From NCBI GenBank assembly GCA_002269645.1, contig NIVC01000106.1:372001-436000 (forward strand): a stretch of 64,000 nt of DNA. The letters are read 5' to 3'. Under the pieces are notes generated by a model. That model worked only from the letters and a program-made list of their open reading frames with translations. It did not search any database and was not told the DNA's origin. Origin of the DNA: Macrostomum lignano (taxonomy: Eukaryota). Below are positions 8,600 through 63,269 of this stretch, in pieces (the stretch's first letter is position 1; every line of letters begins with the position of its first letter). The position numbers and the translations under genes were made by a program.

Positions 8600-9360
8600 C
8601 AAGTAGCTAGTGCAAATGTTACCTCCGCTAATGCAATAATCGCTTTCTCAGGTTGTGCAACAATCCACGTCTCAGCGAGCGCAATAATCTCTTTTTTAGA
8701 CAGCGCAATAATCAGCTTCTCAGCTAGTGAAATAATCATTTACTCATCTAGTGCAATAATCCTTTACTCATCAAGTCCAAAAATTAATGTCTCAGCTAGT
8801 GCAATAGCCCTTTCTAATCTAGTGCAGTAATCCTTGGTTTATCAAGTGCAGTAATCCTTGGTTTATCAAGCGCAGTAATCCTTGGTTTATCAAGTGCAAT
8901 GATCCTTGGTTTATCAAGTGCAGTAATCCTTGGTTTATCAAGTGCAGTAATCCTTGGTTTATCAAGGGCAGTAATCCTTGGTTTATCAAGCGCAGTAATC
9001 CTTGGTTTATCAAGCGCAGTAATCCTTGGTTTATCAAGTGCAGTAATCCTTGGTTTATCAAGCGCAGTAATCCTTGGTTTATCAAGCGCAGTAATCCTTG
9101 GTTTATCAAGTGCAGTAATCCTTGGTTTATCAAGTGCAATAATCCTTGGTTTATCAAGTGCAGTAATCCTTGGTTTATCAAGTGCAGTAATCCTTGGTTT
9201 ATCAAGTGCAGTAATCCTTGGTTTATCAAGTGCAATGATCCTTGGTTTATCAAGTGCAGTAATCCTTGGTTTATCAAGCGCAGTAATCCTTGGTTTATCA
9301 AGTGCAATGATCCTTGGTTTATCAAGTGCAAAAATTTTTAGTTTATCAAGTGCAGTAATC
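8600..9360. repeat. 24-bp satellite AAGTGCAGTAATCCTTGGTTTATC, copy A
   Basis: About 23 homogeneous units at 8815-9360, preceded by strongly diverged units at ~8600-8815. Confidence 0.95.
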
Positions 9361-10029
9361 CAGCAAGTCTCTATTGGTTACGCAATATAAATCAAGTATT
9401 GAGCTATGCTTCCACACTGCGTTTTCAATGCAGTGACGCAATTCAATTCAGCGTTAAAATTCAGCCAGTGCACAGACGATAAATAAAAAGCCTGTTGTGA
9501 TGCAATCTTTTTTAGAATCAGAATTCAACCAGTCAGTTTTTTCTCTAGCATTCTTACAATGCATTTCAAGTCGAAAGAGCTGCTTGACCTTTGCAAAGAA
9601 AGCATGTTTTTCGAATATTTGATCCCTTTAGCATCGAGCAATTTCTTAGCCACGTTGCATGTACCGTCACGGAAAATTTTCTGATCAAACAGTGCAAGTT
9701 CGAACAAAATCGGTTGAGCCATTTTAGTATATAGGATTTTGATTTATTTTTTATCTTAGTCGGCGCCAAAAATGTTTCCAAATAAAGTAAAACACAAAAA
9801 GCGCTGTAGTTTAACCAACAGTGTGTTTATTGCAATCGTTACTCTCTGATTAAGGTGTGTTAGACGCTCCGGGGGGTGCCGCTGCACATGCTTCTGTACT
9901 CTGGCGGGGATTGAGGTGTGGGGGTGTTGGCCGCGCCGGCCGGCTTAAGCCCCTGCAACCGGCCCGGCTTGTCTCCGCTTCCATTTCACAATATTTTTTA
10001 ATTTTATTGTTTTTTACGAACCAATAAAT

Positions 10030-18141: not shown

Positions 18142-20439
18142 TTAGCGAACTAATCTTGACAGTCGATCGAAAATTTGCCTGCTCTGATGTAGTTTGCAGA
18201 TTGATAAAGCAGAGAAACTTGAACCATCTCTGTCAGTGAGACAGTCTGGTCCGAGCTCGTTCACCAGCCACTCGAGTGCTGAGCTGCTCACTTTATTGAA
18301 AGCAGCACGGTGCACTGCAGTCATGTTTTGCCTTCCTCTCAGCTTGAAACACTCGACTCCATTCATCTTCTCTTTGATGAACTGCATTGATTCCGCCTTC
18401 TGGAACTCAGCCGCAGTGTGGATGACTGTCCAGTTCTCTGCATCTCTGTCAGTGAGACAGTCTGGTCCGAGCTCGTTCACCAGCCACTCGAGTGCTGAGC
18501 TGCTCACTTTATTGAAAGCAGCACGGTGCACTGCAGTCATGTTTTGCCTTCCTCTCAGCTTGAAACACTCGACTCCATTCATCTTCTCTTTGATGAACTG
18601 CATTGATTCCGCCTTCTGGAACTCAGCCGCAGTGTGGATGACTGTGTTATTGTTTGCATCTCTGTCAGTGAGACAGTCTGGTCCGAGCTCGTTCACCAGC
18701 CACTCGAGTGCTGAGCTGCTCACAGCATTGAAAGCAGCACAGTCCACTGCAGTCTTGTTTTGCCTTCCTCTCAGCTTGAAACACTCGACTCCATTCATCT
18801 TCTCTTTGATGAACTGCATTGATTCCGCCTTCTGGAACTGAGCCGCAATGTGGATGACTGTGTTATTGTTTGCATCTCCGTCAGTGAGACAGTCTGGTCC
18901 GAGCTCGTTCACCAGCCACTCGAGTGCTGAGCTGCTCACAGCATTGATAGCAGCACAGTGCACTGCAGTCTTGTTTTGCCTTCCTCTCAGCTTGAAACAC
19001 TCGACTCCATTCATCTTCTCTTTGATGAACTGCATTGATTCCGCCTTCTGGAACTGAGCCGCAATGTGGATGACTGTGTTATTGTTTGCATCTCTGTCAG
19101 TGAGACAGTCTGGTCCGAGCTCGTTCACCAGCCACTCGAGTGCTGAGCTGCTCACTTTATTTAAAGCAGCACAGTGCACTGCAGTCTTGTTTTGCCTTCC
19201 TCTCAGCTTGAAACACTCGACTCCATTCATCTTCTCTTTGATGAACTGCATTGATTCCGCCTTCTGAAACTCAGCCGCAATGTGGATGACTGTGTTATTG
19301 TTTGCATCTCTGTCCGTGAGACAGTCTGGTCCGAGCTCGTTCACCAGCCACTCGAGTGCTGAGCTGCTCACAGCATTGAAAGCAGCACAGTGCACTGCAG
19401 TCATGTTGTTCACTCCTCTCAGCTTGAAACACTCGACTCCATTCATCTTCTCTTTGATGAACTGCATTGATTCCGCCTTCTCGAACTTAGCCGCAATGTG
19501 GATGACTGTGCTATTGTTTGCATTTCTGTCAGTGAGACAGTCTGGTCCGAGCTCGTTCACCAGCCACTCGAGTGCTGAGCTGCTCACAGCATTGAAAGCA
19601 GCACAGTGCACTGCAGTCCTGTTGTTCATTCCTCTCAGCTTGAAACACTCGACTCCATTCATCTTCTGTTTGATGAACTGCATTGATTCCGCCTTCTGGA
19701 ACTCAGCCGCAATGTGGATGACTGTGTTATTGTCTGCATCTCTGTCCGTGAGACAGTCTGGTCCGAGCTCGTTCACCAGCCACTCGAGTGCTGAGCTGCT
19801 CACAGCATTGAAAGCAGCACAGTGCACTGCAGTCTTGTTTCGCCTTCCTCTCAGCTTGAAACACTCGACTCCATTCATCTTCTCTTTGATGAACTGCATT
19901 GATTCCGCCATCTGGAACTGAGCCGCAGTGTGGATGACTGTGTCATTGTCTGCATCTCTGTCAGTGAGACAGTCCGCTTCGAGTTCGAAGATCAGCCATT
20001 GGAATGTCGATCCATGATCTGTGAGATTCTCAGCTGCCCTATGCATCACTGTTTTCTGCCTGCTATCTCTTGCTTCGAATGGGTTCCAGTCCACTTCTAT
20101 TGACTGCAGCAGCTGTTTCAGGAACTCCATCGTCTCCGCAGTCTGACTCTTTGCTGCCAGGTGAGTCACCGAGTCGCCATCGCTATCAACCAGCCGAAAT
20201 ATGTCGACCCCGTGCCCCATCTCCAGTAATCGAAGAACCGGCAGTCCGTCTCTGTGCCGAGCTGCAGCAAATATGACGCCTTTGGCGAAGTCTTCTCCAG
20301 GTCCGACGATGTTCTCGGACACCTGGAACAGCAGATCATCAGTGAGCCGTTCGTCTCCGGCTGCTACCGCCTGCTTGATCTGACTGTAGAGACTCTGGGA
20401 GGCCTCGTATTCGCTGGACTCGCTGGGACTCTGAGGTCT
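18142..20439 (-). CDS. Ankyrin-repeat protein, terminal exon, 8 x 72-aa two-ankyrin modules (paralog A)
   Basis: The frame is open upstream of the listed GTG start to a splice acceptor CTAATCCGATTTCAG|AGA (exon starts at 20439; 2298 nt = 766 codons including the stop). Ankyrin-like motifs TVIHxAA, TAVHCAA, SVTHLAA, TVMHRAA. 216-bp periodicity. Confidence 0.9.
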   Translation of the reverse strand, partial: RPQSPSESSEYEASQSLYSQIKQAVAAGDERLTDDLLFQVSENIVGPGEDFAKGVIFAAARHRDGLPVLRLLEMGHGVDIFRLVDSDGDSVTHLAAKSQTAETMEFLKQLLQSIEVDWNPFEARDSRQKTVMHRAAENLTDHGSTFQWLIFELEADCLTDRDADNDTVIHTAAQFQMAESMQFIKEKMNGVECFKLRGRRNKTAVHCAAFNAVSSSALEWLVNELGPDCLTDRDADNNTVIHIAAEFQKAESMQFIKQKMNGVECFKLRGMNNRTAVHCAAFNAVSSSALEWLVNELGPDCLTDRNANNSTVIHIAAKFEKAESMQFIKEKMNGVECFKLRGVNNMTAVHCAAFNAVSSSALEWLVNELGPDCLTDRDANNNTVIHIAAEFQKAESMQFIKEKMNGVECFKLRGRQNKTAVHCAALNKVSSSALEWLVNELGPDCLTDRDANNNTVIHIAAQFQKAESMQFIKEKMNGVECFKLRGRQNKTAVHCAAINAVSSSALEWLVNELGPDCLTDGDANNNTVIHIAAQFQKAESMQFIKEKMNGVECFKLRGRQNKTAVDCAAFNAVSSSALEWLVNELGPDCLTDRDANNNTVIHTAAEFQKAESMQFIKEKMNGVECFKLRGRQNMTAVHRAAFNKVSSSALEWLVNELGPDCLTDRDAENWTVIHTAAEFQKAESMQFIKEKMNGVECFKLRGRQNMTAVHRAAFNKVSSSALEWLVNELGPDCLTDRDGSSFSALSICKLHQSRQIFDRLSRLVR

Positions 20440-20859
20440 CTGAAATCGGATTAGGCAGATAGTTCTAATTAGTCTACGTTAATTAAAGGCCTATGATATT
20501 GGCAGTGAAACTTAAGGACATATAGGTAAATTGCGAAGGGCAGAGCGGAAACATTTCCGCTCGGTTTGATCGTGAGTGTCGTGCTATGTGACTGCAAAGT
20601 GGCAGAGTAGTTGTTTTCCGCTATCATGTTGATGGGCTGCCGTGTCATCACCTTGCAGCCTCTCCGACTTTTTGATCTATGATCTTTGTAGGTAAAGCGC
20701 GATATATGAGAAAGCACCATTTCTGTTTGTCCGTTGCTCAACTTGGTGGTGCCGCTATCTACACTTCCTATCAACGACATCTACTCTGCTTCGGCGGGGT
20801 GTGTGCAGAAACTAGCAGAATGCGCGAGAGACAGACGGTGTGTTTGTCTAGGCCGATGA

Positions 20860-21670
20860 TATCGCCCTGCTGTCCTTTAACCTCTACGTGACGAGTGGTG
20901 CTTGGCCTCACCCTTGTTGCCAACGGCTGTGCCGAAATCGGAACATAGACTATTTGACAGTCGCTACGAACAATTTTGTTAGTTTTCCTAGGAGCCACGT
21001 TGAAATCAATCAGACCATGGCCGGGTTCCATTTGATCGCCGAACTGCCACATGTCATTGGTGTTATCGACTGCACAAATGTCGCTATAAAGAGTCCAACT
21101 AACAATGAGTATGTTTTTGAGAACAGAAAATCGTTTTCTTCTATTATTGTTCAAGCTGTGTGCAGTGTCGCAATGTCATTCACGAACATTCTAGTACTCT
21201 GGCCGAGAAGTACACACGATTCTTTCATGTTCAACAACTCTGCATTAAAGGAGATTCTATCAGAAGGGTTAGTGGCAAGATTCCTCGTCGGAGATAGTGG
21301 ATATCCTCTGAGACCATTTCTCATGAAGGTTTTCGACACTCCAAGAGATGCAAGAGAGACCGACTTCAACCGGAGGCTGCGACAAACTTAGGTGAAAATA
21401 GAATGTTCATTCGGGATTCTAAAGTCTCGATTTTAATGCCTGAATCGTCATTCCGCAAGTCTCCGATTCCATCCGAGCAAGTTTTGCTTGATAATAAGCG
21501 CCTGTTTTGTGCTGCACAACATTGCGATCAACAGAGGAGTTCCACTGGTTGTGCCGATCCAGCTTGACATCAAAGACGAACCGGAGGATGTTGGCGTCGA
21601 TGATATTGGAGCTGGAAGAGCCGAGAGAATACGCATTGTAAATGTGATACAACATGCAAGTAATCAGTAA
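20860..21670 (+). pseudogene. PIF/Harbinger (DDE_Tnp_4, HARBI1-like) transposase relic, copy A
   Basis: Motifs VIGVIDCTNV, NRKS, WPRSTHDS, LVGDSGYPL, FN, IECSFGILKSRF*CL and IISACFVLHN; in-frame stops at 21389 and ~21434. Confidence 0.9.
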
Positions 21671-22557
21671 AGAGGCCCTGGAGCTGGGCCATGGTGGGCA
21701 CGAGGGGCAGCCCGTTGGCGGCGCGGTTGTTCCGGATTTCGGTCTGGAGCTCGAGCGGGAGGCGGTTCCAGAGTGCGTAGACGCGGCTGTCGAGGGTGCA
21801 CGCGAGCTCACCTAGGCGGAGTAGCTGGCCGGTAGCGAGTTGGAGGGCGTCGGTGTAATTCTCGAGCTCGTCCAAGTCGGAGGCGGAGCTGCAGTGAAGA
21901 GCGAAAAGGATCTGGAAGAAGGCGTTTTTCTGCTCCTGGGCATCGGCGTAGTTGGCCTGGAGGACGCGGCAGGCTTCGGCGTAGGCGTTGGGCTGGCAAG
22001 CGTCGAGGGCGCCAAGCTTCCGGAGTGCCGGGCCAGAGTGAAGACCGCGGAGCGCCTCAAACTTATCGACGTCGTTGAGATTGGATTGGTCGACGCGGTA
22101 GAGGAAGGCGTTCCAGAACCCTGGGAATGCGGTGGGGTCGGTGCCGTCGAATGTCGGGAGACGAACCTTCTGGAGAACAGTGGAGTGGATGAGAGCGGCC
22201 GGATCGCTATCGCTGGTTGCGGACGATGACGCAGATGTCAGGGCAGGATGGGCATTAGCGGCGAGCTGTTGTATGAGCAGCTGATTCTGCTGCATCATCG
22301 CGGTCATAGCGGTCAGGAGGGCGTTGATATCAACGGAGGCAGCTGGAGCTGCTTCAGGGATTGCAGTCGTGGAAGGAGAAGCGGGAAGAGCAGATGTCGC
22401 GGCTGCTGGCTGCTGAAGCAGCAGGCGGCGGGTCACTGGCTTCGACGTGCGGCTGCTCCGCGTCGATTGGCGCTTCAGCAGAGGCTGTGCTGTGGTCGTT
22501 CTTGGACTGCTTGATCTGGTCGCCAGATAGGTCAGTTGTTGATATCGTGATAACCAT
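21660..22557 (-). pseudogene. BEL/Pao gag relic (DUF1759-like), 3'-truncated, copy A
   Basis: KVRLPTFDG...FPGFWNAF...V....LNDVDKFEAL...G.A.......Y.EA...L..NY pattern. ATG at 22557 is put out of frame by a 7-nt duplication (GGCTGCT, ~22401-22414). Confidence 0.8.
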
Positions 22558-22615
22558 GGTAATCCGGACGCTCTGCTACCAATTTGTCGAATCGATTACT
22601 CGAGGAAGAGAAAGG

Positions 22616-22633
22616 AACCACGCTCTGCTACCA
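22616..22633 (-). promoter_or_regulatory. Primer-binding site, tRNAi-Met-like, copy A
   Basis: TGGTAGCAGAGCGTGGTT, 3 nt after the LTR end; complements the ...CUCUGCUACCA 3' end of metazoan initiator tRNA. A second partial copy lies at 22568-22581. Confidence 0.8.
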
Positions 22634-22636
22634 ACT

Positions 22637-23168
22637 TGTGGAAGTTGACAATAAACTACATTGAACGAGCGGTTAGCGGGGAAGGAATCAGTAGAAGAGA
22701 AGCAGAGGTGAAGGGCCGAGGCCGCGAGTTGAACTTGTATTTATACTAACATAGCGAACAGGGTAGCTGAAATGTCTGTGGCAAATTAACGGTTATGCTA
22801 GTCTGTGGGAAAAGCGTGGTAGACGAAGGGAGCCAGCTAACTGATAAGTACGAGTCTGTATTGCAAAACAGAAAGTAGAAATATTTGAAGGATGAAATCG
22901 CCAAGACCTCGAATTTGACAAACTTGCTCAGATAGCTAATGAAGTCAGTGTTGCTGCCTGCAAGATAGGTGACAAGCAGGTCATTAACATGGAACTCTAT
23001 CGCATCGCAGAACTGACACGGTGTCTTCGGCTGCGTCGACGGTCTCACCCTGCTATTCTCAACAACAACAACAACAACTGTTCTCAACTAGTGATGAGGC
23101 GCTAACGAATGATGCTCGCCAATGGTGCCTCATTCCTTTGGTTATTGCGCTTGTACTTTGCTTCCACA
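22637..23168 (-). mobile_element. 5' LTR of the BEL/Pao-like element, 532 bp, copy A
   Basis: Perfect 8-bp terminal inverted repeat TGTGGAAG...CTTCCACA, TATAAATA on the minus strand at ~22738-22745, followed by the PBS and gag. Confidence 0.75.
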
Positions 23169-25327
23169 GCTTCTACTTAATAATTAATAATTAATAATAA
23201 TTAATAATTAATAATATAACTACTTAATAATAATAAGTCAAAGACTTTCTGCCACCCAGCTCAGCCTCAGACACTTCGAGATGTTAAATCAGCAAGCAGT
23301 GCGACTTGATAAATATTGGCTTTCATGCTGACCTGACATCCTTGATGCTGGATGCCATCAGAGTCCCATAACCTTTTAAATATCTCGCTCGAGTGCAGGA
23401 AGGAAAGTCGCGTTGCAAGAACAGGACTTCAGGAAAGCTTGAATAAATAAGCAACGCAATAATTGTACTTAATATCGACAATCATTTATTTATTTTGGAT
23501 AAACGCAATAAAATATACTTATTACCAGTCAATGGGGTAGTGGGTGCATAATGTACAGAGAAACAGCTTAATGATAATACGAGCTAAGTCGTAACCAAGT
23601 TACCAAGAACACAGGTGAGTCAACAATGACTAAACGCATCCAGTCTTAGCGCGTTCATACGCTGGTGTGACATGCTGAACTTCTCAACACTTCTTGCAAG
23701 TCGCTCAGGCAACAGCCGAATGGTTGACATTTGATGTCATGTGATCGCCCTTGCGAATCATGCAGGTCTGAAATGCTGCGACTCCGAGACGTCTCAAAGC
23801 GCCACTGAAATTCTTGTCATTGTCAACTTCGCGGCAGCTGTTGAGTACATCGCGCATAACACAAAAAGCAGAAACTGCGGTGATTCTCAGCCAAAGATGC
23901 AAAAATTATATTTCGTAATATTGCAGATGGTGGACCCAAGTATAAGTACAAATCCTAAGAAAAAACTGCTTAGTTTTTTAATCTGAAAATGGATTCTGAT
24001 TACCTCATCACTATGAGAAACCGTGTATTTAATAATGGCAATTATGCCGAATTTACGTAAAAATCAAAATACAGAACTTTGATGCTTTTATTACTGTAGA
24101 GATGAGGTATTAAAAGAGCAAAGCGCACATTTTATGGATCAATTATGGAATAAGCTGAGCCGCTTCATCAAGCTCGCACTGGCGCAGTCACGGCTGTGAA
24201 TGTTTTGTCAAAGTCTGGCGCAATCATCGAGCGAGCAAACTTTAAGTGACGCAACAGCGCAGTGCAAACTGCGTCAGCGCTGGCAAAAGTGCGCAATAAA
24301 ATTCAGTAAATTTTGCACTGCGTTCAAAACGGAGCAGCGAATTAAAGGCGCCCGCCTTCGCCAGTGCGCGGTTGCGAGAGCGACTGCTGTTCTCAGGCTC
24401 TCAGGCTACAGCAGCCTGGCCAATTATCGTGGAGGAAGGGATGACGGCAGGCAGTAAGGGGAGCAAAACTGGATGATTGCGGTGATATTGAAGGTCAAAC
24501 CTGAGCAAGATCTAATGAGTTTTGATTGCTTTGTAGAGGTTCATTCATTGAATGTTACTGTAAGTAGAACAATGCACACATTCGCAGCAAAGTTAAACTT
24601 AAACGTTACGCTCCAAAGATCTTAAGCTTGCTGGAGCAGCTAAGCGAGGCTACATCTCTGAGGGAAATAAATAGCGTTTGGTAAGCCTTTGTTCGAGTCT
24701 TCGTTATTTGATTATTGAGAGCGATTTTATTGCCGGCTATTACTGATCAGTTGAATTACTGAATTAATTGAATTTGAGGCCTCCCTATTCCTAAGGGATT
24801 GAATAGGATCTGCGGACCCTTTAAGGATTATCGATTTAATTGATTTTGATACCCTAGAGTAACCGATAGGGGCACACGACTCCGATTCCGTTATTTCTAG
24901 AAGAAGACGCCCTTTCTGGAGGACGTCGTTATTGTTATGGAGTTGACTTTGTTATTAGGGCGCATCTCTGATAATTGACTTCTGCACTCGAGGAATTCTT
25001 CGACGTCGACGGATTAAATTGTAACGCTCTCACATTCGGCCGATTTTTAGAATTCAAGAAGACTACTCCGGAGGAAGACTCCATAGAAGACTACGAGCCC
25101 TACGAACCTGCTCGACAAAGAAGAGGAGCCCGCACCCGTGAGTGATCACTGAATTTTGTTCCCAGGCTTAAGGTCTGGAAGTGAGAGTTTTCGTGTGACT
25201 GATCACCACCCGATTAAACTCTTCAGCTTGATGGCTTGATAATTTTGATAGTTCTTGTAGATAAATGCAAATATTCAATTTCTACAGCACGGCATACACA
25301 ATAGACAGCCAGCTGCTTAGTACTCAC

Positions 25328-25430
25328 CTCAGCCATGGAGCTGCACGAGTGCCTTCGGCTGCTCAAGGGCGGCTGAGTCGCTGCGGAGGTGCTGACAGAG
25401 CTGATGTGCTGCGCTGAGTTTGAGATGCGT
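25328..25430 (-). CDS. Candidate upstream exon of ankyrin paralog A, ending ATG-GCT-GAG (M-A-E)
   Basis: Acceptor CCATTCTCAG at 25431, 103-nt exon, donor GAG|GTGAGT. It ends in phase 0, matching the phase-0 acceptor at 20439; the other two frames contain stops. The ATG (25336) is in a TCCATGG context. Confidence 0.5.
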
Positions 25431-28980: not shown

Positions 28981-29627
28981 TGATTGGGGATCATGAATGG
29001 GAATCATATGATTGAGATCAAGATTATTAGTTGTTTCCCAGGGGTTCACGCCCCGCATGTGTTCAAGGCAGCTCTAGGGCTGCTGGACTGACTGGGCTCC
29101 GGCGGCGGCAACCCATCTGTGGCCTGCTGGCCAATTTGGGTACGGGCCCCGCCCGGAAGTGAACCTGTGCGTATCAGGTACCTCTGGCCACGGCTCTGAG
29201 GAACAGGTATCACCCTCTGACCTTAACAGGGTATGCGGCCAGTCCGCAAGTTCCGGGGACGGTCTCTTGTCCCCCTAAAGGGCCCAGTGTAGTACCGCGC
29301 TGATGGACCTTTGGTTCGGCCTCTGGTTTTTCCAAGCCGGGCCCTTAGCCGGGGAGTTTCTCGGTTGCCAGCGGTCGGGCCGGTAAGGGCTTAAGCCACC
29401 CCCGGTCGCTACCTCTTGGCCTGGCTGGTGGGTTTGGGGCTACGGCCCAGCGGCTTTTCACCTTTAGTCCCCATTCGCCTTTCAGCGACTCATTCATTTA
29501 CATCCACACGTCCGAGGCTGCTGGAGCACCAACCGAGGTTGGTACCGCGGTCCAGCCGGACATTCGCAACACCGGAACCCCCGGTGCCTCCCAGTCAGCC
29601 CCTGCCGCCGCTCAGGACAATACCGGA

Positions 29628-30959
29628 GTGGCTGGACAACAGGACAGCGGACCTCAGCCCTCTAAGAAGAAGGCCCGTAGCATTGCTCGCTACAAAGCTT
29701 TTCTCCAGCGCAAAGCGGAGGAACGGAGGAGTGCGAAAGCCGCCCCTCCGGCCGCCTCCGAGGAGGGTGCCGGTAACTCTGCAAATCCCGCGGAGGAGCC
29801 GACATCCGACAAGGGGGTGGACCCCGCGCGCCGGTCAGATGCGTCAGGTGTCGCCGAAGCTCCTGGTGCGGCTGGCCCCTCCCGTGACGGTCCCTCTGCC
29901 CGTGTGGAAGCTCCCACGGCCGTGGAGGGATCCAAAGCGGTGGGTGCTGGCCAAACCACAAGCCGAAGCGCACCTATGCGGCTATGGCCAAGAGGCAGCC
30001 GGCCCTGATCATTCAAGGCCAGGAGATGCCTCTTACGGCTGAACAGCTCGACCAAATCTGGCGCAGGTTGGACTCCCACCTGGTCAAGATGGCCTTGAGC
30101 GGCACTACTATTCGAGTCCAAAAGACGAAAGTCGAGGACCAAGCCCTCCATATCCAGCCCGCCGACAGCCAGTCTGGGCAGCAGCTCCTCGAGATGCTGA
30201 AAGCCTTCGACTGGGGTACGGAGCTGCAAAACCTGTTTATCTACAGGGAGGACGAGCGACCCCGGACACACCGGCACCGTGCCTGGATTCCGGCTCGCAG
30301 CTGCATCACCAAGGCCGACGAGCTGCGTCGCCTGCTAGTGGCTACCAACCCGGAGCTACCGGCCAATGGCGTCGTAGTTCACGAGACCATCTCCAAGCCG
30401 GGTGGAGACGGTTTCATGGCTATTTTTGGACTGTCGGATAGCTGGATGCTCCACTATCCGGACTTGTCCATCATCTCTGTCGAGCTGATGCAGATTCAGC
30501 TCTTTAGCTTTGAGTCTGACGCCACTCGCCCACCGCCCCCAGAGAAGCGAAAGCGGGCGAGCGGGGGCTCTGCCGGGCGGAAACGCTCAGGAAAAGAAGC
30601 TTCCGTTCGTCACAACCCTTCCGAGGACGTGGACCCTGTCAGAGGGAAAGCCGCGAAAGCTGCAGCAACAGACGGACGTGGAAAGGGCCGGAAACCCGCC
30701 CGGAATACTATCCGCTCTGGTCTGACTCAGCGCGCGAAGCAGCTGCTGGACACCGCCAAGGCCAACAACCGCAGCAACCCCCAGCCCAGTGTCACCACTG
30801 CTGCCCCCCCCCCCGGAAAACCGGATCGAGAGACAGAATGCCGCCCAGGTGGCGGCCCCGGCCTCGACCATGGAGACCATGCGGGAGGAGCCCATGGAAC
30901 TGGAGTCTGGAGCTATCGGCGGGGCAGAAGAGGCGGCTCTCCTGCACAACTCGCCTTGA
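29628..30959 (+). pseudogene. LINE ORF1 (DUF4780-like by recalled pattern), frameshifted
   Basis: TYAAMAKRQPALII...QIWRRL..HL core. The likely native C-terminus (MREEPMELES...HNSP*, stop 30957-30959) is reached only after an indel at the C11 run 30804-30814. A second shift lies near 29970. Confidence 0.65.
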
Positions 30960-34515
<3,556 letters not shown>

Positions 34516-57084: not shown

Positions 57085-58302
57085 TTAGCGAACTAATCTT
57101 GACATTCGATCGAAAATTTGCCTGCTCTGATGTTGTTCGCAGATTGATAAAGCAAACCGACGTGAACTATCAGTATCAGTGAGACAGTCTGGTCCGAGCT
57201 CGTTCACCAGCCACTCGAGTGCTGAGCTGCTCACAGCATTGAAAGCAGCACAGTGCACTGCAGTCATGTTTTGCCTTCCTCTCAGCTTGAAACACTCGAC
57301 TCCATTCATCTTCTCTTTGATGAACTGCATTGATTCCGCCTTCTGGAACTGAGCCGCAATGTGGATGACTGTGTCATTGTTTGCATTTCTGTCAGTGAGA
57401 CAGTCTGGTCCGAGCTCGTTCACCAGCCACTCGAGTGCTGAGCTGCTCACTTTATTGCATGTAGCACAGTGCACTGCAGTCTTGTTTTGCCTTCCTCTCA
57501 GCTTGAAACACTCGACTCCATTCATCTTCTCTTTGATGAACTGCATTGATTCCGCCTTCTGGAACTGAGCCGCAATGTGGATGACTGTGTCATTGTTTGC
57601 ATCTCTGTTAGTGAGACAGTCTGATCCGAGATCGTTCACCAGCCACTCGAGTGCTGAGCTGCTCACTTTATTGAAAGCAGCACAGTGCACTGCAGTCCTG
57701 TTGTTGAATCCTCTAAACTTGAAACACTCGACTCCATTCATCTTCTCTTTGATGAACTGCATTGATTCCGCCTTCTGGAACTCAGCCGCAATGTGGATGA
57801 CTGTGTCATTGTTTGCATTTCTGTCAGTGAGACAGTCCGCTTCGAGTTCGAACATCAGCCATTGGAATGTCGATCCATGATCTGTGTGATTCTCAGCTGC
57901 CCTATGCATCACTGTTTTCTGCCTGCTATCTCTTGCTTCGAATGGGTTCCAGTCCGCTTCTGCTGCCTGCAGCTTCTGTTTCAGGAACTCCATCGTCTCC
58001 GCAGTCTGACTCTTTGCTGCCAGGTGAGTCACCGAGTCGCCATCGCTATCAACCAGCCGAAATATGTCGACCCCGTGCCCCATCTCCAGTAATCGAAGAA
58101 CCGGCAGTCCGTCTCTGTCCCGAGCTGCAGCAAATATGACGCCTTTGGCGAAGTCTTCTCCAGGTCCGACGATGCTCTCGGACACCTGGAACAGCAGATC
58201 ATCAGTCAGCCGTTCGTCTCCGGCTGCTACCGCCTGCTTGATCTGCCTAAAGAGATGCTGAGAGGCCTCGTATTCGCTGAACTCGCTGGGACTCAGAGCT
58301 CT
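57085..58302 (-). CDS. Ankyrin-repeat protein, terminal exon, 3 x 72-aa modules (paralog B)
   Basis: Same acceptor CTAATCCGATTTCAG|AGA (exon starts at 58302; 1218 nt = 406 codons including the stop). Exactly 360 aa (5 modules) shorter than A; frame intact. Confidence 0.9.
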   Translation of the reverse strand, partial: RALSPSEFSEYEASQHLFRQIKQAVAAGDERLTDDLLFQVSESIVGPGEDFAKGVIFAAARDRDGLPVLRLLEMGHGVDIFRLVDSDGDSVTHLAAKSQTAETMEFLKQKLQAAEADWNPFEARDSRQKTVMHRAAENHTDHGSTFQWLMFELEADCLTDRNANNDTVIHIAAEFQKAESMQFIKEKMNGVECFKFRGFNNRTAVHCAAFNKVSSSALEWLVNDLGSDCLTNRDANNDTVIHIAAQFQKAESMQFIKEKMNGVECFKLRGRQNKTAVHCATCNKVSSSALEWLVNELGPDCLTDRNANNDTVIHIAAQFQKAESMQFIKEKMNGVECFKLRGRQNMTAVHCAAFNAVSSSALEWLVNELGPDCLTDTDSSRRFALSICEQHQSRQIFDRMSRLVR

Positions 58303-58699
58303 CTGAAATCGGATTAGGCAGATAGTTATAATTAGGCTAGGGTAATTAAAGGCCTATGATATTGGCTGTGAAACTTAAGGACATATAGGTAAATTGGGAA
58401 GGGCAGAGCAGAAACATTTTCGCTCGGTTCGGTCGTGAGTGTCGTGCTATGTGACTGCAAAGTGGCAGAGCAGTTGTTTTCCGCTATCATGTTGATGGGC
58501 TGCCGTGTCATCACCTGGCAGCCTTTCCGACTTTTTTCGACATGATCTTTGTAGGTAAAGCGCGATATATGAGAAAGCACCATTTCTGTTTGTCCGTTGC
58601 TCAACTTGGTGGTGCCGCTATCTACACTTCCTATCAACGACGTCTACGAGTACTCTCTGCTTCGGCGGGGTGTATGCAGAAACTAGCAGAATTCGCGAG

Positions 58700-59525
58700 A
58701 GACAGCCGATGATATCGCCCTGCTGTCCTTTAACCTCTACGCGACAGGTGGTGCTTGGCATCACCCTTGTTGCCAACGGCTGTGCCGAAATCGGGACATA
58801 GACTATTTGACAGTCGCTACGAACAACTTTGTTAGTTTTCCTAGGAGCCACGTTGAAATCAATCAGACCATGGCCGGGTTCCATTTGATTGCCGAACTGC
58901 CACATGTCATTGGTGTTATCGACTGCACAAATGTCGCTATCAAGAGTCCAACTAACAATGAGTATGTTTTTGAGAACAGAAAATCGTTTTATTCTATTAA
59001 TGTTCAAGCTGTGTGCAGTGTCTCAATGTCATTCACGAACATTCTAGTACGCTGGCCGAGAAGTACACACGATTCTTTCATATTCAACAACTCTGCATTA
59101 AAGGAGATTCTATCAGAAGTGTTAGTGGCAGTATTCCTCGTCGGTGATAGTGGATATCCTCTGAGACCATTTCTCATGAAGGTTTTCGACACTCCAAAAG
59201 AGATGCAAGAGAGACCGACTTCAACCGGAGGCTGCGACAAACTCGGGTGAAAATAGAATGTTCATTCGGGATTCTAAAGTCTCGATTTTAATGCCTGAAT
59301 CGTCATTCCGCAAGTCTCCGATTCCATCCGAGCAAGTTTTGCTTGATAATAAGCGCCTGTTTTGTGCTGCATAACATTGCGATCAACAGAGGAGTTCCAC
59401 TGGTTGTGCCGATCCAGCCTGACATCAATGACGAACCGGAGGATGTTGGCGTCGATGATATTGGAGCTAGAAGAGCCGAGCGAATTCGCATCGTACATTT
59501 GATACAACATGCAAGTAATCAGTAA
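58700..59525 (+). pseudogene. PIF/Harbinger transposase relic, copy B
   Basis: LYATG, VIGVIDC, NRKS.YSINVQ, WP.STHDS, GDSGYPL, ACFVLHN; frameshift near 59195 and a stop near 59289. Confidence 0.9.
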
Positions 59526-60396
59526 AGAGGCCCTGGAGCTGGGCCATTGTGGGCACGAGGTTGGCGGCGCGGTTGTTCCGGATTTCGGTCTGGAGCTCGA
59601 GCGGGAGGCGGTTCCAGAGTGCGTAGACGCGGCTGTCGAGGGTGCACGCGAGCTCACCTAGGCGGAGTAGCTGGCCGGTAGCGAGTCGGAGGGCGTCGGT
59701 GTAATTCTCGAGCTCATCCAAGTCGGAGGCGGAGCTGCAGTGAAGAGCGAAAAGGATCTGGAAGAAGGCGTTTTTCTGCTCCTGGGCATCGGCGTAGTTG
59801 GCCTGGAGGACGCGGCAGGCTTCGGCGTAGGCGTTGGGCTGGCAAGCGTCGAGGGCGCCAAGCTTCCGGAGTGCCGAGCCAGAGTGAAGACCGCGGAGCG
59901 CCTCAAACTTATCGACGTCGTTGAGACTGGATTGGTCGACGTGGTAGAAGAAGGCGTTCCAGAACCCGGGGAATGCGGTGGGGTCGGTGCCGTCGAATGT
60001 CGGGAGACGAACCTTCTGGAGAACAGTGGAGTGGATTAGAGCGGCCGGATCGCTATCGCTGGTTGCGGACTACGACGCAGATTTCAGGGCAGGATGGGAA
60101 TTAGCGGCGAGCTGTTGTATGAGCAGCTGATTCTGCTGCATCATGGCGGTCATAGCGGTCAGGAGGGCGTTGATATCGACGGAGGCAGCGGGAGCTGCTG
60201 CAGGGATCGCAGTTGTGGAAGGAGCAGCGGGAAGAGCAGATGTCGCGGCTGCTGAAGCAGCAGGCGGCGGGTCACTGGCTTTGACGTGCGGCTGCTCCGC
60301 GTCGATTGGCGCTTCAGCAGAGGCTGTGCTGTGGTCGTTCTTGGACTGCTTGATCTGGTCGCCAGATAGGTCAGTTGTTGATCGCGTGATAACCAT
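59515..60396 (-). pseudogene. BEL/Pao gag relic, copy B
   Basis: Homologous to 21660-22557; no 7-nt duplication but an in-frame TAG at 60070-60072. Confidence 0.8.
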
Positions 60397-60454
60397 GGTA
60401 ATCCGGACGCTCTGCTACCAATTTGTAGAATAGATTCGTCGAGGAAGAGAGAGG

Positions 60455-61024
60455 AACCACGCTCTGCTACCAATTTGTGGAAGTTGACAATAAACTAATA
60501 TTGAACGAGCGGTTAGCGGGGAAGGAATCAGTAGAAGAGAAGCAGAGGTGAAGGGCAGAAGCCGCGAGTTGAACTTGTATTTGTACTAACACAGCGAACA
60601 GGGTAGCTGAAATGTCTGTGGCAAATTAACGGTTATGCTAGTCTGTGGGAAAAGCGTGGTAGACGAAGGGAGCCAGCTAACTGAAAAGTACGAGTCTTTA
60701 TTGCAAAACAGAAAGTAGAAATATTTGAAGGATGAAATCGCCAAGACCTCGAATTTGACAAACTTGCTCGGATAGCTAATGAAGTCAGTGTTGCTGCCTG
60801 CAAGATAGGTGAAGAATTTCTACTTTCTAGACAAGCAGGTCATTAACATGGAACTCTATCGCATCGCAGAACTGACACGGTGTCTTCGGCTGCGTCGACG
60901 GTCTCGCCCTGCTGTTATCAACTACAACAACAACTGTTCTCAACTAGTGATGAGGCGCTAACGAATGATGCTCGCCAATGGTGCCTCATTCCTTTGGTTA
61001 TTGCGCTTGTACTTTGCTTCCACA
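60455..61024 (-). mobile_element. BEL/Pao-like PBS (60455-60472) and 5' LTR (60476-61024), copy B
   Basis: TGTGGAAG...CTTCCACA termini, same PBS, second PBS-like copy at 60407-60420. Confidence 0.75.
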
Positions 61025-63166: not shown

Positions 63167-63269
63167 CTCAGCCATGGAGCTGCACGAGTGCCTTCGGCTG
63201 CTCAAGGGCGGCTGAGTCGCTGCGGAGGTGATGACAGAGCTGATGTGCTGCGCTGAGTTTGAGGTGCGT
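63167..63269 (-). CDS. Candidate upstream exon of ankyrin paralog B, ending M-A-E
   Basis: Same acceptor and 103-nt length as in A; donor GAG|GTAAGC. Confidence 0.5.

Follow-up and report, generated by a model that had tools for sequence, protein, structure and literature searches.

Two tandemly duplicated genes of Macrostomum lignano encode ankyrin-repeat (ANK) proteins built from near-identical 216-bp units, and in these units amino acid replacements outpace silent changes several-fold at just those positions where ANK repeats canonically contact their target, while the outer helices and linkers evolve at an approximately neutral rate. The units are of very recent common ancestry, with a silent divergence of ~3%, and swap segments by recombination or gene conversion. 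All coordinates refer to the window, a stretch of 64,000 nucleotides of contig NIVC01000106.1 analysed at its full length.

Two duplicated ankyrin genes

Gene A lies on the minus strand in two exons, from an ATG at 25336 to a stop codon at 18142, and encodes a 768-aa ankyrin-only product. The coding end of its exon 1 (ATG GCT GAG, 25328–25336) adjoins a GTGAGT splice donor (...ATGGCTGAG then gtgagt); the 5′UTR reaches at least 138 nt upstream of the ATG, to ~25474, and the upstream in-frame stretch is matched by UTR read-through in protein P0006. Beyond a ~4.9-kb intron (20440–25327) and a tttcag acceptor, at a splice junction (MAE/RPQSPSES) that agrees with protein P0001, exon 2 opens with a helical N-cap and a single double-ANK module that has diverged, 'module 0' (19975–20439), a part collinear with paralogue P0015. 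Eight 216-bp units follow (18247–19974), each of 72 aa or two ANK repeats, and the gene closes with a half-module that caps the C terminus (DCLTDRDGSSFSALSICKLHQSRQIFDRLSRLVR), together with the stop codon (18142–18246), all on the minus strand; in the copy-B model this half-module folds as a beta-turn and two helices.

Gene B (63175–57085, minus strand) is a second copy, a tandem segmental duplicate of gene A with three units. Its exon 1 coding end (ATG GCT GAG, then a gtaagc splice donor) lies at 63167–63175; exon 2, aligned with copy A, carries the N-cap and module 0 (57838–58302), the array (57190–57837, from TRF and ORF translation), and the C-cap with stop codon (57085–57189, from ORF translation and the model). 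Duplication block A (5021–26143) pairs with block B (~38392–64000), which extends past the window end. Both blocks are satellite-rich and, outside the satellites, 93–99% identical, with a substitution divergence of 0.0225–0.040 (intron, 3′ flank); the two introns are 97% identical. Two ORFs inside the gene A intron (20888–21391, plus strand; 21570–22436, minus strand) appear transposon-like, judged by eye and from the chimeric P0013, and a family search of them matched no TE family. The sole reverse transcriptase (RT) encoded in the window is part of a LINE-like element at 32.0–32.9 kb, 9 kb off.

Near-identical ankyrin modules, eight in A and three in B, had been reported in a preliminary description of this DNA, and both TRF and the reading frames bear this out. 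TRF delimited two arrays of 216-bp period, one at 18225–19974 with 8.1 copies, 96% matches and no indels, the other at 57176–57837 with 3.1 copies and 94% matches, and the minus-strand ORF A (18142–20322) and ORF B (57085–58185), intact at 2.3 and 1.2 kb and with canonical splice sites, hold eight and three in-register 72-aa units, each starting DCLTD. Gene A units are 93–99% identical in DNA (~96%), yet all eight amino acid sequences are unique. Highly internally conserved (HIC) repeats are defined as more than 85% identical over at least 100 aa in one protein; here identity is 96% over 1750 bp. The best 72-aa self-identity is 0.97 in A, 0.93 in B and 0.99 in P0013, a related copy apparently interrupted by or fused to RT sequence. 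Unit number runs from three (B) through eight (A) to at least nine (P0013), values taken from paralogues or separate assemblies; other arrays of the family count 2.4 units (P0030) and ~7 (P0018, a similar ANK-kinase). An exact look-up of ORFs A and B in public assemblies, for alleles or transcripts, returned no record.

As first described, the products of both genes are ankyrin-repeat proteins, a class in which tandem ~33-aa repeats of helix-turn-helix plus beta-turn, with a TPLH/AA-type motif, stack into a solenoid. A phmmer search of the PDB returned NOMPC (1e-19) and ankyrin-1/2 (~4e-11), and Pfam PF12796/PF13637 were found on P0001–P0005. An AF2 model (pLDDT 92.1, pTM 0.86), in which the N-cap forms helices 5–27 and 30–44 with ANK repeats after, matched ANK solenoids in Foldseek (Espin1-AR, AnkB, NOMPC, DARPins). 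The earlier term 'receptor' overreaches: gene A protein is caps and ANK throughout, and lacks a signal peptide, any transmembrane segment and any signalling domain. NACHT, NB-ARC or NTPase domains gave no match to it in the PDB or NCBIfam and none occurred in the family members inspected; its NCBIfam matches were spurious, sub-threshold and repeat-summed (e.g. 'precorrin-8X methylmutase', with 0 passing stretches). We also considered a hidden kinase, caspase or NOD exon 3′ of the arrays and found none within the window: the ORFs stop at the C-cap, a tblastn search of the window with the P0017 caspase domain gave no significant match, and the kinase domains of P0022 and P0030 gave nothing below E=0.36.

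Replacements at the contact positions

Aligning the 11 units (8 A + 3 B) revealed 37 variable nucleotide columns of 216, confined to 24 codons, 21 of which change the amino acid; the clustering of variable bases into codons is significant (P=1.8e-4). The lists of variable and invariant residues in the preliminary description match this alignment exactly. Its count of two kinds of silent change needs correcting: purely silent differences number three (ACT/ACG at codon 4, AAT/AAC at codon 10, TTC/TTT at codon 20), and the threonine pair is ACT/ACG, not ACA/ACG. Its near-invariant outer helices hold broadly, not strictly, given the singletons K22M, E31Q, L41F, E69D and P72S. Several replacements are codon swaps of two or three bases (GCT/AAA, CAA/AAC, AGG/TTC) between identical neighbouring codons.

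In DARPins (Binz et al. 2003), a consensus framework flanked by N- and C-caps is randomised at positions 2, 3, 5, 13, 14 and 33. The natural arrays are alike in their near-consensus invariant framework, their capping repeats and their variability at 2, 3, 5, 13 and 33; eight of the 12 DARPin-mapped codons vary in the window, and 10 of 12 with P0013 included. They differ in being evolved rather than designed, in alternating 36-aa repeats of two types, in repeat number (16–18 versus 2–3 internal repeats), in a nearly fixed position 14 and in extra variable positions 1, 10 and 15. On the secondary-structure map of the model, the variable positions fall in the beta-turn, the inner-helix end and the adjoining loops; alignment and map thus agree with the earlier assignment of these sites to the DARPin-randomised ones. 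From canonical ANK geometry and the modelled secondary structure, the variable residues are predicted to line the concave, ligand-binding face.

Over the whole unit, dN/dS is 1.83 (5.5 synonymous versus 35.5 nonsynonymous changes, P=0.24; 11 units), not distinguishable from neutral, and we therefore used an a-priori site-class test in its place, with 12 codons preset as DARPin-randomised ANK positions by alignment to the ANK consensus. These 12 codons hold 21 of the 35.5 nonsynonymous changes (P=5e-8); omega is ~5.6 there versus ~0.8 (0.82) elsewhere, and dN at the face exceeds dS (P=3.5e-5), in tests that are count-based on 11 (+8) units. The contact positions at which replacements outrun silent changes are 2, 3 and 5 of the beta-turn and 13 at the inner-helix end, and also 10 and 15. 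The pattern recurs in three independent arrays: in the hold-out array P0013, where 10 of 12 face positions vary versus 15 of 60 others (P=2.4e-4), in a kinase-fused array (7/12 versus 5/58, P=3.6e-4) and in a caspase-fused array (7/12 versus 9/59, P=3.5e-3). The ANK-kinase P0030, whose 2.4 units afford few counts, is consistent with this: four of its codons change silently and five by replacement, and face positions 9, 19 and 20 account for three of the latter. The positional pattern of variation is statistically solid, and the diversifying selection first proposed for these sites is upheld by the count-based excess of dN over dS.

The framework tells a different story from the one first drawn. 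Its third-position identity had been read as a sign of constraint, but it is no evidence of it, because omega there is ~0.8, with dN close to dS and no departure from neutral; on the same value we rejected purifying selection as what conserves the framework. Its invariance is accounted for by recent common ancestry or homogenisation rather than by any demonstrated constraint. Between A and B, the N-terminal region shows 17 nonsynonymous to 3 synonymous changes and the C-cap 9.8 to 2.2, both with dN/dS of at least 1, so the whole gene may be weakly constrained.

The arrays could instead be a neutral by-product, in which a dispensable ANK gene was amplified of late within unstable, satellite-rich DNA and its variable sites are merely the least constrained part of the surface, with neither adaptive diversification nor a role in recognition. 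The whole-unit ratio, not significantly above 1, the framework omega and the ratios in the N-terminal region and C-cap are consistent with this, as are the satellite- and TE-rich surroundings, the RT sequence fused to or interrupting P0013, and the lack of expression evidence in the literature and public-assembly look-ups. Relaxed constraint, however, caps dN at dS, yet dN is several times dS at the 12 preset positions; swaps of two to three bases stand beside identical neighbours; three other arrays also vary at these positions; and both ORFs are intact with canonical splice sites. We consider a neutral origin unlikely.

Exchange among units and the source of the variants

Testing the units for recombination showed that 66 of 100 site pairs are incompatible under the four-gamete test, multi-nucleotide codon states included, with Rm=6 (at least six events) within 216 bp; all four combinations of GCT/AAA (codon 57) and CAA/AAC (codon 45) are present. 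The preliminary description had already noted shuffled variants, and RQNK is indeed paired with FNA, INA, LNK and CNK (in A6, A5, A4 and B2). It had also proposed concerted evolution, of which exchange between units is supported and strict, array-specific homogenisation after the duplication is not: silent divergence between units (pS 0.032) equals that between the segmental copies (intron 0.030). Nor are A units mutually closer than to B, as the strict form would have them, since B3 is as near A5 and A6 as A units are among themselves.

The multi-nucleotide codon replacements and mosaic structure could also arise through gene conversion templated by diverged paralogues resembling P0015 or P0003, or through a targeted mutator (DGR- or AID-like), instead of through selection on point mutations. 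Conversion is disfavoured because the paralogues are only 36–52% identical, so that each tract would carry silent differences into the codons alongside, where the alignment has none. There is no adenine bias (consensus A in 9 of 37 variable columns versus 30% A overall), CpG context occurs in 0 of 37, and the only RT is that of the distant LINE-like element. Diversity-generating retroelements, in which a template/variable repeat pair with adenine-specific substitutions lies beside an RT, differ likewise, the consensus at variable columns here being A 9, C 11, G 9 and T 8, with no adjacent RT. VLR-like somatic receptors start from an incomplete germline gene that is completed by copying flanking cassettes; the window genes are complete and spliceable in the germline, which argues against somatic assembly. 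Templated conversion and a targeted mutator both strike us as very improbable.

We attach similarly little weight to an assembly artefact, in which collapsed or chimerised units of paralogous or allelic arrays would fake the shuffling. Many recent duplicates exist in M. lignano, and older family gene calls (P0007, P0017, P0018) contain frameshifted units. Against this, no indels or frame breaks occur across 1.7 kb, the variation is codon- and position-specific, and units of the same kind recur in independent assemblies; an artefact could yield shuffling, not positional bias.

The gene family and a possible role in recognition

Among the sequences compared, the family of gene A occurs only in M. 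lignano. Its members are built on one plan of cap and modules, followed by no further domain, by an STE-type kinase (E=2e-36 in one paralogue) or by a caspase (E=1e-16 in P0017, A0A1I8F2E4); several have near-identical units, and some vary at the same positions as gene A. P0017, which has the N-cap and a 71/72-aa module in common with the window gene, carries behind its ANK pro-domain the caspase p20/p10 domain with a QACxG active site that marks platyhelminth ANK-caspases. P0015 (PAA58540.1, BOX15_Mlig034366g1) is collinear with gene A end to end at 50% identity (767 versus 765 aa), with the same caps, nine modules, an ANK-only product and a single coding exon, but its own modules are mutually only ~37% (up to 54%) identical. 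P0015 thereby represents the ordinary diverged state of the gene A architecture; no single ancestral source module stands out in it, the A consensus being identical at 36–45 of 72 positions to every P0015 module. The gene A pattern also appears in at least one mollusc protein. In the literature, no paper came up under the UniProt or locus identifiers of the family, and a search on Macrostomum ankyrins yielded only a study of apoptosis (PMC11463336).

ANK, TPR and WD arrays of fungal NOD-like receptors have highly internally conserved repeats (PMC4986451), an analogy drawn at the outset that proved apt; PMC5100051 is a further precedent. The likenesses are, firstly, repeats more than 85% identical in one protein; secondly, repeat number, which here differs between paralogues or assemblies, with recombination or shuffling between repeats; and thirdly, a concave ANK face whose beta-hairpin and inner helices bear residues that are hypervariable or under positive selection. 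The window genes, in contrast, are animal genes without NACHT/NB-ARC or an N-terminal effector, their unit is a 72-aa double ANK, and their relatives carry a C-terminal kinase or caspase as opposed to the N-effector/NOD layout; the window gene would work like fungal HIC arrays but is not an NLR. The same survey classed only 0.8% of ANK/TPR/WD repeats in metazoans as having high internal conservation, none of them described or analysed (PMC4986451). PRDM9 zinc-finger arrays (PMC8925151) are likewise an animal coding minisatellite of near-identical units with unequal exchange and fast change at ligand contacts, but consist of DNA-binding C2H2 zinc fingers of unrelated fold, with KRAB/SET domains and a role in meiotic recombination. 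Closer in phylogeny are the platyhelminth ANK-caspases (PMC11463336), called unique to parasitic flatworms save for one annelid ANK-caspase (Alitta virens); that study also describes an M. lignano caspase with a kinase-like pro-domain. P0017 is an ANK-caspase, of the same phylum and with an ANK array joined to a caspase, whereas the window genes lack the caspase, as they lack the C-terminal kinase domain (HRDxKxxN, DFG) of the ANK-STE-kinase paralogues; the study is silent on internal repeat conservation and hypervariable sites.

Immunity, allorecognition or reproductive conflict had been put forward at the outset as candidate roles; the only functional pointer to emerge is the kinase or caspase domain on paralogues. 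Because paralogues end in these effectors, the family ANK array most likely senses a ligand for, or regulates, effectors of signalling and cell death. We favour, as the probable reading, a cytosolic ANK-only solenoid in which the N-cap, one diverged double-ANK module, eight (A) or three (B) near-identical modules and the C-cap would present a rapidly diversifying binding groove, likely in a sensor family of innate-immune or non-self type. Unequal crossing-over would duplicate, delete and shuffle units into new combinations of contact residues, selection would favour novelty at those residues, and the protein may therefore track a fast-changing ligand; the ANK-only window genes would be free sensors, adaptors or decoys.

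Diversifying selection might instead be real but non-immune, directed at an endogenous or reproductive ligand: the product could be a decoy or inhibitor of the ANK-kinase and ANK-caspase paralogues or, the animal being a hermaphrodite, a factor of sperm, egg or sexual conflict or a selfish element of toxin-antidote type. An ANK-only product with no effector suits such roles, as do a multicopy, copy-number-variable locus and paralogues whose common N-cap and modules could hetero-associate; DARPins, moreover, are known to bind caspases (cited in PMC11463336). Nothing specific speaks against it, although a secreted seminal protein is unlikely because there is no signal peptide, and overall we regard a non-immune role as rather unlikely.

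Near-identical repeats with diversifying contact residues are a recognised route to fast new specificities (fungal NLRs, PRDM9), a signature documented so far mainly in fungal immune receptors; our literature search found no description of it for animal ankyrin repeats. Its recurrence in caspase- and kinase-fused paralogues and in at least one mollusc protein points to an unrecognised flatworm sensor-effector family, and the arrays, as a natural experiment with ANK binders on a consensus framework, are of interest for protein engineering. RNAi, transgenesis and in-situ hybridisation all work in M. lignano, which opens the hypothesis to direct test. ANK-caspases are themselves an unexplained novelty in a phylum that has lost FADD and the DED caspases of extrinsic apoptosis (PMC11463336). 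More tentatively, and less likely than not, Macrostomum and perhaps other lophotrochozoans may possess NOD-less intracellular sensors of non-self or danger, whose hypervariable double-ankyrin arrays are diversified by unequal exchange and positive selection and either wired to a caspase or STE-type kinase or left as free sensors or decoys. If true, these would parallel, in an animal, the HIC-repeat NLR repertoire of fungi.

Gene structure within a duplicated locus

The window, of eukaryotic DNA rich in satellites, includes a tandem segmental duplication exceeding 21 kb, in which block A (~5021–26143) pairs with block B (~38392–64000) at 93–99% identity outside satellites. The entire ankyrin (ANK) gene and several satellite arrays (59-, 24-, 14- and 13-bp units) lie inside the duplication; satellite copy number differs strongly between the blocks, with a 24/72-bp array occupying 0.5 kb in A versus 5.2 kb in B. 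Between the blocks is a LINE-like retroelement (29400–34500, plus strand) with endonuclease-, reverse transcriptase (RT)- and RNase H-like ORFs, the RT ORF giving an NCBIfam RT match (E=1e-15).

Both gene copies carry a minus-strand array with a 216-bp period, for which TRF reported 8.1 copies in A (18225–19974; 96% matches, no indels) and 3.1 in B (57176–57837). ORF A (minus strand, 18142–20322) spans eight in-register units of two ANK repeats each and ORF B (minus strand, 57085–58185) spans three. Predicted antisense ORFs of 67–215 aa also cross array A on the plus strand (18194–19921), the unit being free of stop codons in that frame. Among 5.8 billion proteins searched, no more than five relatives reached E<1e-5, and each of them comes from Macrostomum lignano, a free-living flatworm. 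Two of these, P0001 and P0002 (90–95% identical), have a longer N-terminus in which SSMAE is joined to RPQSPSES, and we therefore located a short upstream exon. The gene structure of both copies is as follows: on the minus strand, the coding part of exon 1 of gene A begins with the ATG at 25336 (ATG GCT GAG, then gtgagt) and is followed by a 4.9-kb intron with its acceptor (tttcag) at 20439; gene B, likewise on the minus strand, is built in the same way, with its ATG at 63175 and acceptor at 58302. Gene A encodes 768 aa and gene B 408 aa; neither product contains a signal peptide or a non-ANK domain, and tblastn with the domains of paralogues found no kinase or caspase domain in the window. 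By eye, the introns hold a Harbinger-type transposase look-alike (plus strand) and a gag-like ORF (minus strand), at 20679–22557 in gene A and 58618–60473 in gene B; an older gene call, P0013, wrongly joins such intronic ORFs to the ANK exon.

Amino acid replacement at binding-face codons

Aligning the 11 units revealed 37 variable columns among 216, spread over 24 codons (21 amino-acid changing, three purely silent); every unit, and every signature at the face positions defined below, is unique. Variable bases cluster by codon (37 in 24 codons versus 31 expected, P=1.8e-4). The preliminary description had proposed near-identical modules that are hypervariable at DARPin-like binding positions; its residue lists and examples of shuffled variants agree with our alignment, while its two kinds of silent change proved to be three, the threonine pair being ACT/ACG. 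It also took the scarcity of silent change as evidence, an argument that fails over the whole unit: the minimum of 5.5 synonymous versus 35.5 nonsynonymous changes does not depart from an expectation of 20% synonymous sites (P=0.24), at a whole-unit pairwise pN/pS of 1.83.

DARPins are randomised at ANK positions 2, 3, 5, 13, 14 and 33. By alignment to the ANK consensus we mapped these positions, before any counting, to 12 face codons of the unit (8, 9, 11, 19, 20, 42 and 44, 45, 47, 55, 56, 6). The face codons received 21 of the 35.5 nonsynonymous changes, as compared to 17.6% expected (P=5e-8), and omega (dN/dS) is ~5.6 there and 0.82 at the remaining, framework codons. Because dN exceeds pooled dS at the face (P=3.5e-5) and does not differ from dS in the framework (P=0.6), the diversification signal at the binding-face positions, as first claimed, is real, and the near-identity of the framework stems from a recent common ancestor of the units, not from any constraint that can be demonstrated. 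Relaxed constraint on the gene as a whole is a live alternative, in that the N-terminal region (17 nonsynonymous to 3 synonymous differences) and the C-cap (9.8 to 2.2) both evolve at a dN/dS of at least 1 between A and B; however, relaxation cannot account for dN above dS at the face.

The 90%-identity cluster of P0001 and P0002 contains further copies, among them P0013, a chimeric call in an older assembly whose sequence includes a third array, with eight complete units and a truncated ninth. In this hold-out array, variation affects 10 of the 12 face codons versus 15 of 60 others (P=2.4e-4); across the 19 units of this array and of A and B together, seven different residues occur at position 44. 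The same bias appears in two paralogues that are more distant and also have near-identical units, one fused to a kinase (7/12 versus 5/58 variable, P=3.6e-4) and one to a caspase (7/12 versus 9/59, P=3.5e-3). Replacement in four arrays is thus reproducibly concentrated at canonical ANK contact positions, where it outpaces silent change. In the part of P0013 (UPI0007A303B3) from residue ~1010, the ninth unit of this B-like copy, which has at least nine, leads straight into RT-like sequence, through either a retroelement insertion that cuts the copy short or an error of assembly or gene calling.

An AlphaFold2 model of the copy B exon-2 protein (mean pLDDT 92.1, pTM 0.86) is an unbroken ANK solenoid with the C-terminal tail as a capping repeat; its best PDB matches by Foldseek are Espin1-AR, ankyrin-B, NOMPC, latrotoxins and DARPins. 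Placed on the secondary structure of this model, positions with at least three states fall in the beta-turn (7, 9–11), the inner helix including its end (16, 19, 22), the turn leading into the second inner helix (43–45, 47), that helix itself (49, 52) and the loop past it (55, 57), the sole remaining one being position 72, in the linker that joins successive units. In the outer helices (23–33, 61–70), no position has more than two states. From canonical ANK geometry, the variable positions would lie on the concave face.

Exchange among units and its timescale

The shuffling of variants noted earlier was borne out by recombination tests. All four gametes are present in 66 of 100 pairs of informative sites from different codons, and the Hudson-Kaplan minimum is six events inside the 216-bp unit. 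The four-gamete pairs include multi-nucleotide states (GCT/AAA at codon 57 with CAA/AAC at codon 45), combinations that recurrent mutation cannot explain. The near-identical units recombine, and their number differs among copies. Variable columns of the 11 units show no adenine or CpG bias, which, together with an excess of transversions over transitions (24:17), argues against a targeted mutator.

Of the concerted evolution originally suggested, exchange between units is supported. A strict, array-specific form since the duplication is unsupported, because silent divergence between units (pS 0.032) equals that of the segmental copies (intron 0.030, 3' flank 0.0225–0.040, N-terminal pS 0.028) and A units are no closer to each other than to the third B unit, B3. 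Recent unit amplification with ongoing inter-unit exchange fits equally well.

Protein family and candidate function

When 1.84 billion representatives were scanned in full with HMMER, 45 proteins had E<1e-30, the closest members with a readable source being from M. lignano. They share an N-cap (...ALEAGD...), double-ANK modules of 70–72 aa and a C-cap, after which follows nothing further (P0015, P0003, P0004), an STE-group kinase (P0016, P0018, P0019, P0022, P0030; best PDB matches SLK, STK10, MAP3K2 and MAP3K5, E ~2e-36) or a caspase (P0017; QACRG motif, caspase-8/-3 matches, E ~1e-16). Two members again show high internal conservation, P0017 (0.92) and P0030 (0.94), the latter from an independent NCBI assembly. 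Gene A and its ANK-only paralogue P0015 are collinear over their full length (50% identity, 765 versus 767 aa, the same nine modules). The modules of P0015 average only ~37% identity among themselves, and the gene A consensus unit, with no single conspicuous source among them, is 50–63% identical to each; because it is closer to every P0015 module than these are to one another, it resembles a natural 'consensus design', and gene A looks like a homogenised version of the ordinary family architecture.

Several further observations concern the family. P0020 (M. lignano PAA90912.1, 1967 aa) has the same N-cap and ~71-aa double-ANK modules, and its C-terminal half resembles, by eye, a multi-pass transmembrane, TRP-channel-like region, which suggests that an ion channel uses modules of this type as well. 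Directly downstream of the ANK-kinase gene P0030 is a 261–266-bp tandem repeat (4.2 copies, 91% identical; positions 8755–9872 of locus L002, M. lignano NIVC01000368.1). Near-identical double-ANK arrays (67–70-aa period, self-identity 0.85–1.0) also occur in mollusc and unnamed proteins (P0034, Patella vulgata XP_055957569.1; P0023, Potamilus streckersoni KAK3588331.1; P0025; P0050), with variable residues of the Patella protein once more located at the beta-turn and just past the inner helix. This pattern may extend widely across Lophotrochozoa.

The best-known animal analogue is the PRDM9 zinc-finger minisatellite. The closest described phenomenon is that of the highly internally conserved (HIC) ANK, TPR and WD arrays of fungal NLRs, which are polymorphic in repeat number, are shuffled and show positive selection at the concave face; such repeats are rare in metazoans (0.8%) and were not analysed there (PMC4986451). 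Concerted evolution is rare among metazoan domain repeats and has been tied, speculatively, to arms races between hosts and parasites (PMC5100051). Earlier work described ANK-caspases of platyhelminths, as well as a caspase of M. lignano whose pro-domain is kinase-like, and mentioned neither repeat conservation nor hypervariability (PMC11463336); we found no paper mentioning the identifiers of family members. Unlike NLRs, the window genes lack a NOD domain, the defining NLR feature, and unlike their caspase- and kinase-bearing paralogues they lack both of those domains; they therefore fall outside all of these families, although by analogy they would work like HIC recognition arrays.

We regard the following explanation, taken as a whole, as rather probable: the array would form a fast-diversifying binding groove, arrays across the family would act as ligand sensors for downstream kinase or caspase effectors, and the ANK-only genes may act as free sensors, adaptors or decoys.
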